A DNA stretch of 64,000 nucleotides from the sequence record NC_031127.1; one strand, 5' to 3'. Both the position numbers and the translations under genes were made by a program. Positions 2,175 to 5,831 of the stretch are shown piece after piece (the stretch's first letter is position 1; every line of letters starts with the position of its first letter). Below the pieces are notes generated by a model. It was not told where the DNA came from and did not search any database. It was given only the letters and a program-made list of their open reading frames with translations.

Positions 2175-3014
2175 ATGAGAAAGGTGCTTTTCGGAATACT
2201 TGCAGCGTTGACGTTTAGCATGTCCGCAGTCGCGGCAGACGAAGTAGTGATTACCACAGGACAGCAGGGCCTGACCTATAACTCGGTCTATGGCGTTAAT
2301 CTGGCCGGTGCCATCAGCGAGTTCGGTACTCGTGCACGGGTCATCCCGTCGAAGGGGTCGTTAGACAACCTCGATAAAGTTGCCGCCGGTGAAGCCCAGA
2401 TTGGTTTCACGCAGGCAGATGCTTTCCAGTTCTGGCGCGCTAAGCACCCGAACGAAGCGCAGAACGTTGACATCGTCGGTCAGCTGGCCCGTGAATGTGT
2501 CTGGGTCGCTGTCAAGAAAGATGGCAAAGTTAAAGATGCGAAAGATTTAACCGATGGCGTGAAAATCGCAGTCGGTGAACCGGACTCTGGCTCCTACGCC
2601 AGTTGGCAATATCTGCAACAGTTGGTGAAAGAGTATTCCAAAGCGGAAACTTACGCCAAGGGCGGTATCCGTTCGTTGTCCAAAGTGGCAACGGGTGAAT
2701 ACGACGCATTCCTGTGGGTATCTGCGCCGGATAAAAGCAACAAATTCCTCGAAGCGGTCAATCAAGACAGTTCTGGTTTAGAGCTGATTGACATGAGCAC
2801 ATGGAACGTCAACGACAAACTGCCTAACGGCCAGTCTGTGTATACGAAAGAAACGGCCAAGACAGACAAGACCGCGTTCTTCGGTAAGAAAGTTGATGTT
2901 CCGTGCACCACCACACTCGTCGTGGCCAACACTGACGCTGGTGATGATCTGCTCGAAACCGTTTCTACCATCCTCCTGAAAAACAATTCACGAGTGATGG
3001 GGGACAAAAAATAA
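2175..3014 (+). CDS. TAXI-family TRAP transporter solute-binding protein
   Basis: Signal peptide (…SAVA-AD), ITTGQQG..Y, SKGSLDNL, IGFTQAD and VGEPDSGS motifs. Confidence 0.82.
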   Translation: MRKVLFGILAALTFSMSAVAADEVVITTGQQGLTYNSVYGVNLAGAISEFGTRARVIPSKGSLDNLDKVAAGEAQIGFTQADAFQFWRAKHPNEAQNVDIVGQLARECVWVAVKKDGKVKDAKDLTDGVKIAVGEPDSGSYASWQYLQQLVKEYSKAETYAKGGIRSLSKVATGEYDAFLWVSAPDKSNKFLEAVNQDSSGLELIDMSTWNVNDKLPNGQSVYTKETAKTDKTAFFGKKVDVPCTTTLVVANTDAGDDLLETVSTILLKNNSRVMGDKK

Positions 3015-3020
3015 AAATAT

Positions 3021-3650
3021 GTACTGACCCAGTGCATCTTTTCGGGCTGGGTAGGGTTAATGTCCCTACCTGCGCGGTGTTCGTTAAGGCTGGTAACGTT
3101 CGCTAAGACCTATCGCATACCCGTAAGTCGATAGCAGCCGGTTACACAAAGAACTATCCATGTGGTAGGTAACCGACCGTTCACGATCTCATTAGGTGAG
3201 CAAATAATCTATGCAAGGACTTCTAGGATTTGTGCTCGACATGATGGGCAGCTTACGCCGCCTCATCAAGCAGTTACGAATCTGGAAGCTTGCCCATTAC
3301 TGGTTTACAGGCGAAAAGGCATCTCGTGAGAGTGTGCCATGCAAACTGCGTATTTACATTAGTATGTTCACTGCGGTGAGCATAGGTCAAGCCCCGGAAC
3401 GATAAGCCGGTCAGCTACGCCTGTAAAATACAATCTGAAAATCATAATGGGATTAAGTTCCCAGATTTGAAAAGGCGACTGTGTGTCGTCGGCGATAACC
3501 CCCCGTCGTGGACTCGGTTATCCCAAAGGTAATGTGAAAGGGGTTGGTGCTTGGAGGCGCTAAGACCGGCGGATACGCTGGCTCAGAAGAAGAAGAAGTC
3601 CATCAACCCCGTTCTCACCTGAGTAACACCCTTTACAAGGCGTTACTTAT
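3021..3650 (+). ncRNA. candidate large (~630 nt) structured non-coding RNA
   Basis: No credible ORF; more than 12 helices, including long-range TTTACAGGCG/CGCCTGTAAA, ATGGGCAGCTT/AAGCTTGCCCAT and GGGGTTGGTG/CATCAACCCC; begins at the G of a TATG. Confidence 0.6.
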
Positions 3651-3671
3651 ATATGCGAAAGCGAGGTGAAC

Positions 3672-3998
3672 ATGGGAATGTATCGTGAAGGCCCTGAAAG
3701 CACGGTGACTCACCGTAATCATGATTACTCTGTGGATGCATTGCTGGATATAGCGGAACGTCATAGCCTCGTTCAAATTCCAGTGTCTAGAATAGAATGG
3801 ATTTTAAACGAGACTACGCTCGATGATGAGCGGGTTAAGAATGCAGATACGGATTATCCAATAATCGTGCTGCACGAAGGAAGTTTGTATATTGTATTAG
3901 ACGGTGCCCATCGCCTTGCGAAGGCGGTAGCCGAAGGCAAAGACACCATCGCAGCCAAGATATTGGTGCCTGCGAATTTACCGAAACCGGTACGATAA
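3672..3998 (+). CDS. stand-alone ParB/Srx-like N-terminal domain protein
   Basis: PIIV...IVLDGAHRLAKA motif; GAGG SD. Confidence 0.72.
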   Translation: MGMYREGPESTVTHRNHDYSVDALLDIAERHSLVQIPVSRIEWILNETTLDDERVKNADTDYPIIVLHEGSLYIVLDGAHRLAKAVAEGKDTIAAKILVPANLPKPVR

Positions 3999-4029
3999 AA
4001 GTCTAATTACAAGAATACACTGTATTATG
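3997..4029 (+). promoter_or_regulatory. phage promoter for the main tRNA/ncRNA operon
   Basis: 22-bp exact copy of 826-847 followed by TATG (4026-4029). Confidence 0.55.
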
Positions 4030-4108
4030 TCGGAAACCCGATTTGATGTTGCACAGAGCGTTACGCTGCGGCGTTTGCTGGTGTGCAGGGTTAGGTCGGG
4101 ATTCTGGC
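4029..4108 (+). ncRNA. 80-nt rod-like hairpin RNA at the operon 5' end
   Basis: GTCGGAA/TTCTGGC, CCCGA/TCGGG and TGCAC/GTGCA stacked helices. Confidence 0.45.
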
Positions 4109-4116
4109 ACCTATTT

Positions 4117-4202
4117 GGCGGGTTACTCAAGCGGTCAACGAGAGCAGACTGTAAATCTGTTGCCTTCGGGCTTCGTAGGTTCAAATCCTTCACACGCCAC
4201 CA
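4117..4202 (+). tRNA. trnY: tRNA-Tyr (GTA), with stem mismatches
   Basis: Loop CTGTAAA, long variable arm, CCA end; G-A mismatch in the acceptor stem and T-T in the T stem. Confidence 0.88.
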
Positions 4203-4208
4203 AACAAT

Positions 4209-4428
4209 GGTACCTGTCACAGCAGCCCTTGAGGCTTACGCGATGATGACTGGTCGCCCATTTTACCGGGTAACACATTCCTGCCAGCGCGCTATTGCCG
4301 CGAAGGTTTGCCCCCGGTGTTGTGCGTTATTCGGGTCTACCCACCATCTGCGGATGGTGCGTTGATGTCTCGATATACGCCATAGGGACGCCTTGAGAAC
4401 TCCGTGAAATTCGGAGAGGTACCACCCA
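4209..4428 (+). ncRNA. ~218-nt tRNA-like RNA (acceptor stem + T-arm with large insert)
   Basis: GGTACCT/AGGTACC acceptor, CTCCG-TGAAATT-CGGAG arm, ends ACCCA; internal helices. Confidence 0.55.
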
Positions 4429-4495
4429 TTCTTGTGTTTCCTTATCCTGAAGACATTCCTAAGACAAATTCATTCATGGTCGAGGAAACACAGAA
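4429..4495 (+). ncRNA. hairpin with conserved 37-nt loop, copy A
   Basis: 13-bp stem TTCT(T)GTGTTTCCT/AGGAAACACAGAA; loop similar to 5579-5615. Confidence 0.55.
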
Positions 4496-4503
4496 CCTAT
4501 TCA

Positions 4504-4579
4504 GGTGCTATCGTCTAGTGGCCGAGGATACTACCCTGTCACGGTAGAGACCGGAGTTCGATTCTCCGTAGCACCGCCA
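4504..4579 (+). tRNA. trnD: tRNA-Asp (GTC)
   Basis: Cloverleaf, loop CTGTCAC, CCA. Confidence 0.95.
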
Positions 4580-4587
4580 TTTTCAAA

Positions 4588-4663
4588 TGCGTCTTAGCTC
4601 AGTTGGTAGAGCGCACCCCTGATAAGGGTGAGGCCACTGGTTCAAGTCCAGTAGATGCAACCA
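4588..4663 (+). tRNA. trnI: tRNA-Ile (GAT)
   Basis: Cloverleaf, loop CTGATAA, CCA. Confidence 0.95.
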
Positions 4664-4670
4664 GTATTGC

Positions 4671-4747
4671 ATTCCCGTCATCTAGTTGGTCCAGGATACG
4701 ACACTTTCACTGTCGGTACACGAGTTCAAATCTCGTCGGGAATACCA
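4671..4747 (+). tRNA. trnE: tRNA-Glu (TTC)
   Basis: Cloverleaf, loop CTTTCAC, CCA. Confidence 0.95.
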
Positions 4748-4752
4748 TTTGT

Positions 4753-4843
4753 AGAGAATTGACTGAGTTGGTTTAAGGTGCTCCCCTGCTAAGGGAGTGT
4801 ATGCGAAAGTGTACCATTGGTTCGAATCCAATATTCTCTGCCA
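4753..4843 (+). tRNA. trnS: tRNA-Ser (GCT)
   Basis: Loop CTGCTAA, long variable arm, discriminator G, CCA. Confidence 0.93.
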
Positions 4844-4844
4844 T

Positions 4845-5018
4845 GTTCTCTTGCTGTGGGAAATAGAAGCGAACGTAGAAACGCCGGTTAGCTCAAAGCT
4901 TAGAGCGTCTCATCTTCGGATGAGAAGGTTGGGGGCGCAACCCGAAATCCCTATCGGCAACGGCCTGCTTGTCAGGATTAGAAACATCTACGTGGATGGG
5001 TACTTCTACAGCAAGAAC
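4845..5018 (+). ncRNA. multibranch RNA enclosing a tRNA-like module (4883-4959)
   Basis: Outer stems GTTC..TTGCTGT/ACAGCAAGAAC and TAGAAG/CTTCTA; inner D-arm-like AGCTC..GAGC and an anticodon arm capped by cUUCGg. Confidence 0.5.
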
Positions 5019-5042
5019 AAAACAGTGGGAGCATTGTCCACT

Positions 5043-5151
5043 GTGACACCGGCAAAGGTTTCGACCTTGCGGGTTGGGCGGAAGCCCGATGTTCCCCCGA
5101 ACGCTGGCCTTCTGGCCAATACAGTGAAAGCTTACCCTTGCCGATGATCAC
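5043..5151 (+). ncRNA. multibranch structured RNA
   Basis: CGGCAA/TTGCCG and GGGT/ACCC close four tetraloop hairpins (TTCG, GGAA, CCCC, TTCT). Confidence 0.45.
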
Positions 5152-5224
5152 CTCTTCTGCTGCTGCCAACACACTGTATAACCAGAATCAGTCCTGCCTT
5201 AAATGGCAAGCGTTCACCCTTTAC

Positions 5225-5302
5225 GTTTCCTCAAGGCGGCTTGGGGTGTTATCTCTCGGCTCTGTTGGGTAACATCGTGGTTCAACTCCATGGGAAACAC
5301 CA
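5225..5302 (+). tRNA. aberrant tRNA-like RNA, anticodon unassignable
   Basis: Acceptor GTTTCCT/GGGAAAC + A + CCA, T-arm CGTGG-TTCAACT-CCATG; 4-nt D loop; 9-bp anticodon-position stem with a 14-nt loop. Confidence 0.55.
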
Positions 5303-5308
5303 AACAAT

Positions 5309-5400
5309 GGCTCCGTAGCTAAATCGGTAGAGGCAGACTTTAATTAGTTCTCCAACGATTTTATAATCGCGTGGTGTAGGTTCAAGTCCTACCGGAGCAA
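5309..5400 (+). pseudogene. degenerate type-II-like tRNA (possibly derived from Leu-TAA)
   Basis: GCTCCG/CGGAGC acceptor, GTAGG-TTCAAGT-CCTAC T-arm, long variable arm; 6-nt anticodon loop, no CCA. Confidence 0.5.
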
Positions 5401-5474
5401 GAGCACTGCTGTTAAGTTGGTTAACACCCGACCCATACTCGGATATTCGCACGTTCGATTCGTGCCAGTGCTCG
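5401..5474 (+). tRNA. atypical tRNA with CAT anticodon (Met or Ile2)
   Basis: GAGCACT/AGTGCTC acceptor, loop CCCATAC (C33 instead of U33), T-loop TTCGATT; CCA not encoded. Confidence 0.65.
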
Positions 5475-5484
5475 CCCTTATTTA

Positions 5485-5560
5485 GACTCTGTAGTTCAGT
5501 TGGTAGAACGGTGGACTGTTAATCCATATGTCGCAGGTTCGAGTCCTGCCAGAGTCGCCA
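5485..5560 (+). tRNA. trnN: tRNA-Asn (GTT)
   Basis: Cloverleaf, loop CTGTTAA, CCA. Confidence 0.96.
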
Positions 5561-5566
5561 CATTTT

Positions 5567-5626
5567 GCATTGCCCGAGTCCCGAATGACATTCCGGAAAA
5601 ATATCATCCATGGTCACGGGCAGTGC
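5567..5626 (+). ncRNA. hairpin with conserved 37-nt loop, copy B
   Basis: 10-bp stem GCATTGCCCG/CGGGCAGTGC; loop similar to 4445-4481. Confidence 0.55.
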
Positions 5627-5831
5627 AGAACCAAAATCCCAGCCTTCGCAGAAAAAGCTTACCTGCATTAGCGGTCCCCTGCGGGGGTTGGGTACCACCT
5701 TTGTCCGTTTTGTTTTTTTCTTTCAATTGCCTGGCGGTATTGGTGGGAACAAAACGGGTAAAGCCCTAGCGGGGGAAAAGCCGTTAACAACAACAGAAGC
5801 AGTAAAAACAGAAGTAAAAGCAGGAGTAGTT

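Follow-up and report, generated by a model that had tools for sequence, protein, structure and literature searches.

Genomic context of the structured segment

The window, i.e. the whole stretch of DNA that was analysed, is the first 64 kb of the genome of the Erwinia jumbo phage vB_EamM_Huxley (KX397368, genus Machinavirus), and its coordinates are identical to those of the phage record. As delineated with ARAGORN and Rfam, a same-strand array of tRNA genes occupies 4117-5560 on the plus strand and encloses a structured RNA segment: A gap of 464 nt, bounded on its 5' side by tRNA-Ser(gct) and on its 3' side by an odd 94-nt tRNA, holds a non-coding, folded segment of about 460 nt (4844-5303) within the tRNA operon (Table 1). 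No promoter-like or terminator-like sites stand out around this gap.

In Huxley and its relatives, the start of the structured element always lies immediately 3' of the CCA of a tRNA or a tRNA-like unit. In pEa_SNUABM_43, a different CCA-ending tRNA-like unit replaces tRNA-Ser and the element again begins directly past the CCA. At the opposite end, the CCA of unit B, the last module of the segment, is followed by the spacer AACAATG, the same spacer as is found 3' of tRNA-Tyr.

Table 1. Features of the structured segment and the preceding tRNA gene, with coordinates in the window
Feature	Position	Strand	Support and remarks
tRNA-Ser(gct), encoded CCA	4753-4843	+	ARAGORN and Rfam; structured RNA begins at the very next base
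Outer stem P1, 13 bp	4849-4861 with 5004-5016	+	MFE, RNAalifold; 12 pairs invariant, one changes from U-A to U-G
Second long-range stem P2, 7 bp	4873-4879 with 4987-4993	+	MFE, RNAalifold; invariant in all relatives
Cloverleaf	4883-4958	+	MFE z = -2.65; D-arm motif; compensatory pairs in arm; no tRNA call
Closing stem of cloverleaf, 6 bp (GCCGGT/ATCGGC)	4883-4888 with 4953-4958	+	
D-like arm (GCTC/GAGC)	4891-4894 with 4903-4906	+	loop AAAGCTTA (RNA AAAGCUUA, palindromic) at 4895-4902
Capped arm, 7-bp stem	4908-4914 with 4919-4925	+	UUCG at 4915-4918
Irregular fourth-arm hairpin	4928-4947	+	loop CGCAAC
Small hairpin CCUG-CUUGU-CAGG	4964-4976	+	in three-way junction above P2; MFE, RNAalifold; invariant
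Domain 2a, second cloverleaf-shaped four-way junction	5027-5096	+	MFE z = -2.77; two compensatory pairs in pEa_SNUABM_6
Domain 2b, multi-branch	5099-5215	+	RNAalifold; closing stem GAACGCU 5099-5105 with AGCGUUC 5209-5215
Unit B, tRNA-like	5225-5302	+	ARAGORN only at 80% thresholds; compensatory changes in acceptor and long stem

Domain 1: a cloverleaf enclosed by nested long-range stems

The 5' domain of the segment (4845-5018) had been described in an earlier note as a tRNA-shaped module within a larger RNA. The elements claimed for this module, namely an acceptor-like stem, a D arm, a UUCG-capped stem and a non-canonical T-like hairpin, were all found where the note had placed them, whereas its account of the surroundings needs refinement: the long-range pairing of 4845-69 with 5003-18 does exist, with P1 as its exact extent, and of the "two extra hairpins" one is the small hairpin at 4964-4976, while the other is actually the long-range stem P2.

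This architecture is recovered at several levels. The cloverleaf is the minimum-energy structure of the 77-nt piece folded alone, with only one of 200 shuffles folding equally well, and folding of the 174-nt stretch recovers the nested structure with z = -2.82. RNAalifold applied to five relatives yields the same seven helices, i.e. P1, P2, the closing stem, the D-like arm, the UUCG arm, the irregular hairpin and the hairpin at 4964-76. Across 4844-5303 as a whole, the folding z-scores of the individual modules range from -2 to -2.8.

Domains 2a and 2b and the tRNA-like unit B

The closing stem of domain 2a has 9 bp, and the other elements are a 3-bp hairpin, a long arm with a UUCG loop (5060-5063) and a hairpin capped by GGAA (loop 5080-5083). 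Domain 2b includes a C/U-rich loop, a second copy of AAAGCUUA (5127-5134) and, from 5185 onwards, a block of some 35 nt conserved throughout the genus; the closing stem of the domain is retained in the ChrisDB-type phages, with a compensatory A-U to G-C change in Caitlin. The C/U-rich loop contains GAUCACCUC (5146-5154), which is identical in sequence to the start of the 3' tail of the 16S rRNA (the anti-Shine-Dalgarno region); it is invariant in relatives that have the domain and occurs once in the 64 kb against an expectation of 0.5, a number that is not significant alone.

Unit B has an acceptor stem of 6 bp, a short D-like hairpin containing GG and a canonical T arm (loop UUCAACU) followed by A and CCA; the anticodon and variable arms are replaced by a stem of 7-10 bp with a 14-nt loop. 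The anticodon stem that ARAGORN proposes for it at 80% thresholds conflicts with the covariation. Its homologues in all examined Machinavirus members show 6-7-nt non-canonical loops and no CCA. The elements common to all examined Machinavirus are the closing stem of domain 2b, the block from 5185 and unit B. Between the RNA at 4845-5303 and the other candidate RNAs at 3021-3650 and 4209-4428, no internal paralogy was detected.

The overlapping gp17 annotation

In the GenBank records of Huxley, Machina and Parshik, the 5' part of the segment is annotated as a hypothetical protein, gp17, a 98-codon open frame at 4851-5147, while the five Korean relatives bear no annotation over the gap. That this frame is a protein-coding gene is very improbable. 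Its sole support beyond the annotation is an end-to-end match to a PHROG family of unknown function, which, having the equal length of 98 positions, we take to have been built from the gp17 annotation itself; Pfam offers no match. Among six sequences, the substituted columns are distributed over codon positions 1, 2 and 3 as 16, 12 and 11, i.e. with no third-position bias, and nearly every change is non-synonymous. In four of the six sequences, the frame is shifted by a 1-nt indel at 5063/5064, in the UUCG loop of domain 2a, so that the C-terminus is unrelated and the length differs between phages. Further, the start is a TTG codon located 8 nt past the tRNA, without a ribosome-binding site. 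The annotation of the three records is thereby corrected, in that the gp17 entries of Huxley, Machina and Parshik do not represent a protein gene.

Conservation, covariation and strand

Over the segment, RNAalifold on five relatives predicts 134 consensus pairs, of which seven show compensatory double changes. Standard pairs occupy 98.7% of the pair cells in domain 1, where the double compensatory changes are confined to the UUCG arm. This arm is rewritten in pEa_SNUABM_43 and pEa_SNUABM_42, where three of the seven pairs are changed (two on both sides), CUAGC replaces the UUCG loop and the linker is one base shorter; yet all seven pairs are kept and the same cloverleaf is the minimum-energy structure. 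It follows that the stem of the arm matters, while its UUCG cap does not. The earlier note had staked its reading on the conservation of both the cap and the outer stem: the former proved replaceable in these two phages, but the outer stem, like the stem of the arm, is conserved.

Outside this arm, the stem substitutions are all wobble-compatible on the plus strand only (G-U to A-U, C-G to U-G and U-A to U-G, as well as G-C to G-U in the metagenome relative). On the other strand they would amount to C-A mismatches, which supports the plus strand as the one that folds. By energy, the minus strand folds about as well, and energy alone is not decisive; the plus strand is chosen for its tRNA context, tetraloops and G-U pattern. 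P1 and P2 are based on thermodynamics and conservation, with one U-A to U-G change in P1 and none in P2. The lack of covariation in these outer stems reflects the shallowness of the clade, whose members are all at least 94% identical.

The identity of domain 1 reaches 98-99% in three of four compared relatives and is 89% in pEa_SNUABM_43, on account of the rewritten arm; the adjoining gp20 coding sequence is 89-95% identical in three relatives where aligned.

Four sequencing runs, all available as contigs and hence not informative on RNA ends, strand or level, were compared with the locus. A hint of expression is given by a wastewater metatranscriptome, which contains a 211-nt contig on 4870-5080 with variants of the pSal-SNUABM-04 type, for which DNA carry-over is possible; the same run has no depth on 4253-4507, 4763-4864 and 5120-5476. 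Two runs listed as "RNA?" contain a pSal-SNUABM-04-like phage across the whole tRNA array. Within the array, tRNA-Ile(gat) (4595-4650) and tRNA-Asn (5487-5560) are matched at 85-97% by contigs from many unrelated sequencing runs, indicating that they are close to widespread bacterial tRNAs and that the shares of runs matching here are inflated.

Phyletic distribution

Domains 1 and 2a are found only in a Machina subgroup, consisting of Huxley, Machina, Parshik, pEa_SNUABM_6, pEa_SNUABM_10, pEa_SNUABM_42, pEa_SNUABM_43, pSal-SNUABM-04 and one metagenome contig. BLAST searches against 50,697 phage records recovered the full element in only 10 records, all of Machinavirus, five of them 100% identical. 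Pattern scans of IMG/VR returned only ChrisDB, a metagenome scan gave one near-identical relative, and a scan of bacterial genomes no homologue. A covariance model of domain 1 detects a single copy in Huxley and none in the whole genomes of ChrisDB, pEa_SNUABM_9, Caitlin, SPN3US and pEa_SNUABM_29. The existence of ChrisDB-type relatives without domain 1 implies that it is dispensable for that lineage.

Relationship of the cloverleaf to tRNAs

The cloverleaf is linked to tRNAs by its D arm. The pattern TTAGCTCA-N5-TAGAGCG occurs at only two sites in the 64 kb, against a chance expectation of 0.01: one is the cloverleaf and the other is the D arm of tRNA-Ile(gat) (4594-4613), situated 294 nt upstream of the cloverleaf copy. 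As the pattern is otherwise restricted to tRNA-Ile(gat), the module at 4883-4958 most likely descends from a tRNA gene, judging by the sequence of this arm. A global alignment of the cloverleaf to 115 tRNAs of these arrays does not rise above shuffles (z ~1.5). A possible resemblance to a host tRNA was also considered and found unsupported, as BLAST of the cloverleaf against E. coli genomes gave no match.

The D stem and its flanks are of tRNA type and match tRNA-Ile(gat), while the other features expected of a tRNA are missing. On the stretch 4845-5018, the Rfam tRNA model (RF00005; gathering threshold 29 bits) has no match at E<=10, and ARAGORN calls no tRNA even at 70% of its thresholds. 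The counterpart of the acceptor is a 6-bp stem, both strands of which run on into the larger RNA, and is followed by ACGG instead of CCA. The D loop AAAGCUUA is devoid of GG, and the fourth arm has a CGCAAC loop on an irregular stem rather than a UUCRANY T loop; thus, the tRNA elbow cannot form in the cloverleaf. In place of a 5-bp anticodon stem with a 7-nt loop there is a 7-bp stem with UUCG (CUAGC in pEa_SNUABM_43 and pEa_SNUABM_42).

The elbow, the free acceptor end, the CCA and the anticodon loop are the features read by RNase P, the CCA-adding enzyme, EF-Tu, synthetases, the ribosome and anticodon nucleases. Since they are absent, we do not classify the cloverleaf as a functional tRNA mimic. 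The description "non-decoding tRNA mimic" in the earlier note hence holds in so far as the module is non-decoding, cloverleaf-shaped, related to tRNAs through its D arm and embedded in a larger structured RNA; it fails with regard to a working mimic, given the lack of an elbow, free ends, a CCA and a model score. Set beside tRNAs (RF00005) and mascRNA-type units, the module has in common with them the cloverleaf shape, the same D stem as a real tRNA of the array and a likely origin from a tRNA gene, and differs from tRNA in the closed 6-bp "acceptor", the missing CCA, D-loop GG and T loop, and the tetraloop in place of the anticodon loop.

Palindromic loops

The motif AAAGCUUA contains the palindrome AAGCUU and forms both the D-like loop of domain 1 and a loop of domain 2b. 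The window has four copies of it against 1.0 expected, two of them inside the RNA, and both loops are invariant among the relatives. ChrisDB, which is without domain 1, also lacks the motif in the gap between tRNA-Ser and tRNA-Asn. In single-sequence ensembles, the AAGCUU of the D-like loop is predicted to be accessible and the copy in domain 2b is ambiguous, so that accessibility is half supportive of a contact. These sequences could engage in a 6-bp loop-loop contact, either intra- or intermolecular, that takes the place of the lost contact between D loop and T loop.

Palindromes or repeats related to the domain 2b loop were also noted at other sites. The start of the gp20 coding sequence (5649-5663) repeats 13 of the 15 bases of the loop segment at 5122-5136, including a third AAAGCTTA. 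In domain 2b of ChrisDB (positions 2455-2490 of the locus L006), two palindromes, one of 8 nt (ATTTAAAT) and one of 10 nt (TAGCATGCTA), are present where Huxley has the loop with AAGCTT, and Caitlin and pEa_SNUABM_4 have ordinary hairpins at this site.

Comparison with known RNA families

Scans with Rfam at gathering thresholds and at E<=10 found no match on the plus strand of 4845-5303, and searches of the literature yielded no account of it. For tmRNA and RNase P RNA, in particular, there is no Rfam match and no default ARAGORN tmRNA call, and at relaxed thresholds ARAGORN returns spurious permuted calls that span real tRNAs.

The earlier note had pointed to the bacterial Y RNAs, with which the present RNA shares the general plan of a closing stem joined to a tRNA-like module; in addition, one relative infects Salmonella, which has Rsr. 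In YrlA, the 5'/3' terminal stem leaves from the position of the anticodon stem, and an elbow like that of tRNA is imitated by the T and D loops. The present RNA shows the reverse topology, its terminal stems being extensions of the closing, acceptor-like stem, and it has neither an elbow nor a T-loop mimic. The YrlA model (RF02553) has no match on 4845-5018 at E<=10, its only weak matches (E ~0.005) falling on real tRNAs at 5447-5509, and no TROVE/Ro60 domain (PF05731) is encoded in the 240-kb phage genome, the control genomes being positive. This largely refutes the Y-RNA-like reading, and an RNA that tethers a Ro60/Rsr protein is exceedingly unlikely at this locus.

A closer likeness is offered by GOLLD and ROOL. 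Both are located close to phage tRNA islands and assemble into RNA-only cages, and the linker of GOLLD sometimes carries tRNAs (10.1101/2024.12.08.627333). The parallel consists in a large, intricately folded non-coding RNA of phages or prophages next to or in tRNA islands, with a tRNA-shaped unit inside the larger RNA. However, the present RNA is shorter (about 460 nt versus about 580 and over 800 nt), its embedded unit is a degenerate tRNA relic and not a working tRNA, and the models of GOLLD (RF01998) and ROOL (RF03087) have no match in 2900-5700 at E<=10. A further comparison is with RNAC and RNAD of T4, which are shorter, at about 120-140 nt, have no curated model and are likened to our RNA by description. 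They derive from the T4 tRNA region, are co-transcribed with phage tRNAs and have an unknown biological role (PMC3014915). What the present RNA has in common with them is to be a non-tRNA RNA in a phage tRNA region, on the same strand inside the tRNA array. In sum, the RNA has the setting and ornate character of the RNAs of phage tRNA regions, matches none of the models and is undescribed.

Mechanistic interpretation and alternatives

We favor, with a probability of roughly 60%, the interpretation that the tRNA operon includes a non-coding, highly folded RNA of about 460 nt with 4845-5018 as its 5' domain, and that the cloverleaf of this domain is a tRNA-derived, rigid structural junction. The RNA would be transcribed from the plus strand together with the tRNAs of the operon. 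Its cloverleaf would represent a tRNA gene of which only the four-way junction is left: in the D loop, the palindrome AAGCUU would have taken the place of GG, a stable cap that of the anticodon loop and an unrelated hairpin that of the T arm, with the acceptor ends fused into the two outer stems. Such a module is predicted to act as an architectural junction of the larger RNA, and neither as a decoder nor as a bait for known tRNA-binding factors. The tRNA-processing enzymes of the host probably free the RNA, with the 3' maturation of tRNA-Ser generating its 5' end; RNase P acting at unit B might produce an RNA of about 380 nt and a 78-nt CCA-ending tRNA-like RNA, or the two might be left joined. 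By analogy with T4 RNAC/RNAD or ROOL/GOLLD, it may accumulate as a stable RNA in infection, and the two palindromic loops, identical in sequence, may contact each other intra- or intermolecularly.

A bolder version, which we regard as doubtful, would make the 460-nt segment a new class of ornate phage RNA built from exapted tRNA genes and comprising a multi-branch domain besides three cloverleaf relics. The two invariant AAAGCUUA loops would hold its fold or self-association, and in infection it might serve as an RNA-only scaffold, as proposed for ROOL and GOLLD.

If the cloverleaf were instead a working tRNA mimic or decoy, it would bind or titrate a tRNA-recognising factor of the host or phage, and its tetraloop would render it undecodable and uncleavable in the anticodon loop. 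Its shape, its tRNA-type D stem and its location among tRNAs, in an operon with other anticodon-less units such as unit B, are what one would expect of a mimic; but with the elbow of GG and T loop, the free acceptor end, the CCA and the anticodon loop all gone, no score with the tRNA model, a cap that is freely replaceable and a global similarity to the array tRNAs within the range of shuffles, we consider this unlikely. On another view, the segment would consist of decaying tRNA pseudogenes or spacer with functionless leftover structure. The tRNA arrays of the genus gain and lose genes quickly, sister lineages do without domain 1 and unit B of pEa_SNUABM_6 is broken in its T arm, all of which would fit decay. 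Yet domain 1 is better conserved than the adjoining coding sequence in three of four relatives, the stem changes are compensatory or wobble-only, the loops that were replaced carry stable UUCG or GNRA caps, and the tRNA remnant has acquired additional long-range stems that enclose it, making mere decay quite improbable.

The stems and tRNA-like units might also be no more than cleavage signals for RNase III, E or P that mature the adjoining tRNAs, the excised RNA being functionless. rRNA operons have long processing stems, which P1 and P2, jointly about 20 bp with an internal loop, resemble, and a CCA immediately precedes the element, while another terminates it and is followed by the AACAATG spacer also found after tRNA-Tyr. 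Nevertheless, an ornate structure of 460 nt with stable tetraloops and invariant single-stranded stretches exceeds what a cleavage signal needs, and the same neighbouring tRNAs are processed in the ChrisDB-type phages, which have neither domain 1 nor domain 2a; hence, a pure processing cassette, too, is an unlikely account.

If the structural-junction interpretation is correct, it would suggest a possible route by which such RNAs originate: a tRNA gene loses its decoding and recognition features and is reused as a junction in a bigger fold. The large folded RNAs of phage tRNA islands (T4 RNAC/RNAD, ROOL, GOLLD) are unexplained, and an undescribed example is added here, in a cultivable jumbo phage of the nucleus-forming type with a laboratory-tractable host. 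Natural variants are at hand in the swapped arm of pEa_SNUABM_43, the broken unit B of pEa_SNUABM_6 and the ChrisDB-type phages devoid of domains 1 and 2a.

Other unusual tRNA-like genes of the arrays

Several neighbors of the segment are themselves unusual. The 94-nt tRNA directly downstream (5308-5401) is called by ARAGORN as Ile(aat) and attains only 31.4 bits with Rfam; it has a 36-nt insert with a hairpin past the anticodon region. Its counterpart in the metagenome relative receives a "???" call with a two-base anticodon, and the sequence differs in pEa_SNUABM_43 and pEa_SNUABM_10. It is followed at 5402-5473 by a tRNA with a CAU anticodon (38.9 bits with Rfam; ARAGORN only at 90% thresholds), which is absent from the GenBank annotation of Huxley and is annotated as tRNA-Met or tRNA-Ile2 in relatives.

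The unit that replaces tRNA-Ser in pEa_SNUABM_43 (1388-1500 of the locus L003; about 105 nt) combines an acceptor GCCGGT/ACCGGC with a canonical T arm and ACCA, and the Rfam tRNA model does not score it. It represents a further tRNA-like RNA devoid of an anticodon, with an acceptor similar to the cloverleaf's closing stem. In the ChrisDB-type phages, unit B is directly followed by an unannotated tRNA-like gene whose anticodon loop has CAU and whose variable arm is a long hairpin (about 2611-2712 of both L006 and L008). In pEa_SNUABM_6 (about 1940-2710 of L005), unit B is broken inside its T arm and followed by about 780 bp with two annotated open reading frames (2001-2519 on the plus and 2489-2707 on the minus strand), which occupy the place of the odd tRNA and tRNA-Met and may represent a mobile insertion into a tRNA-like gene.
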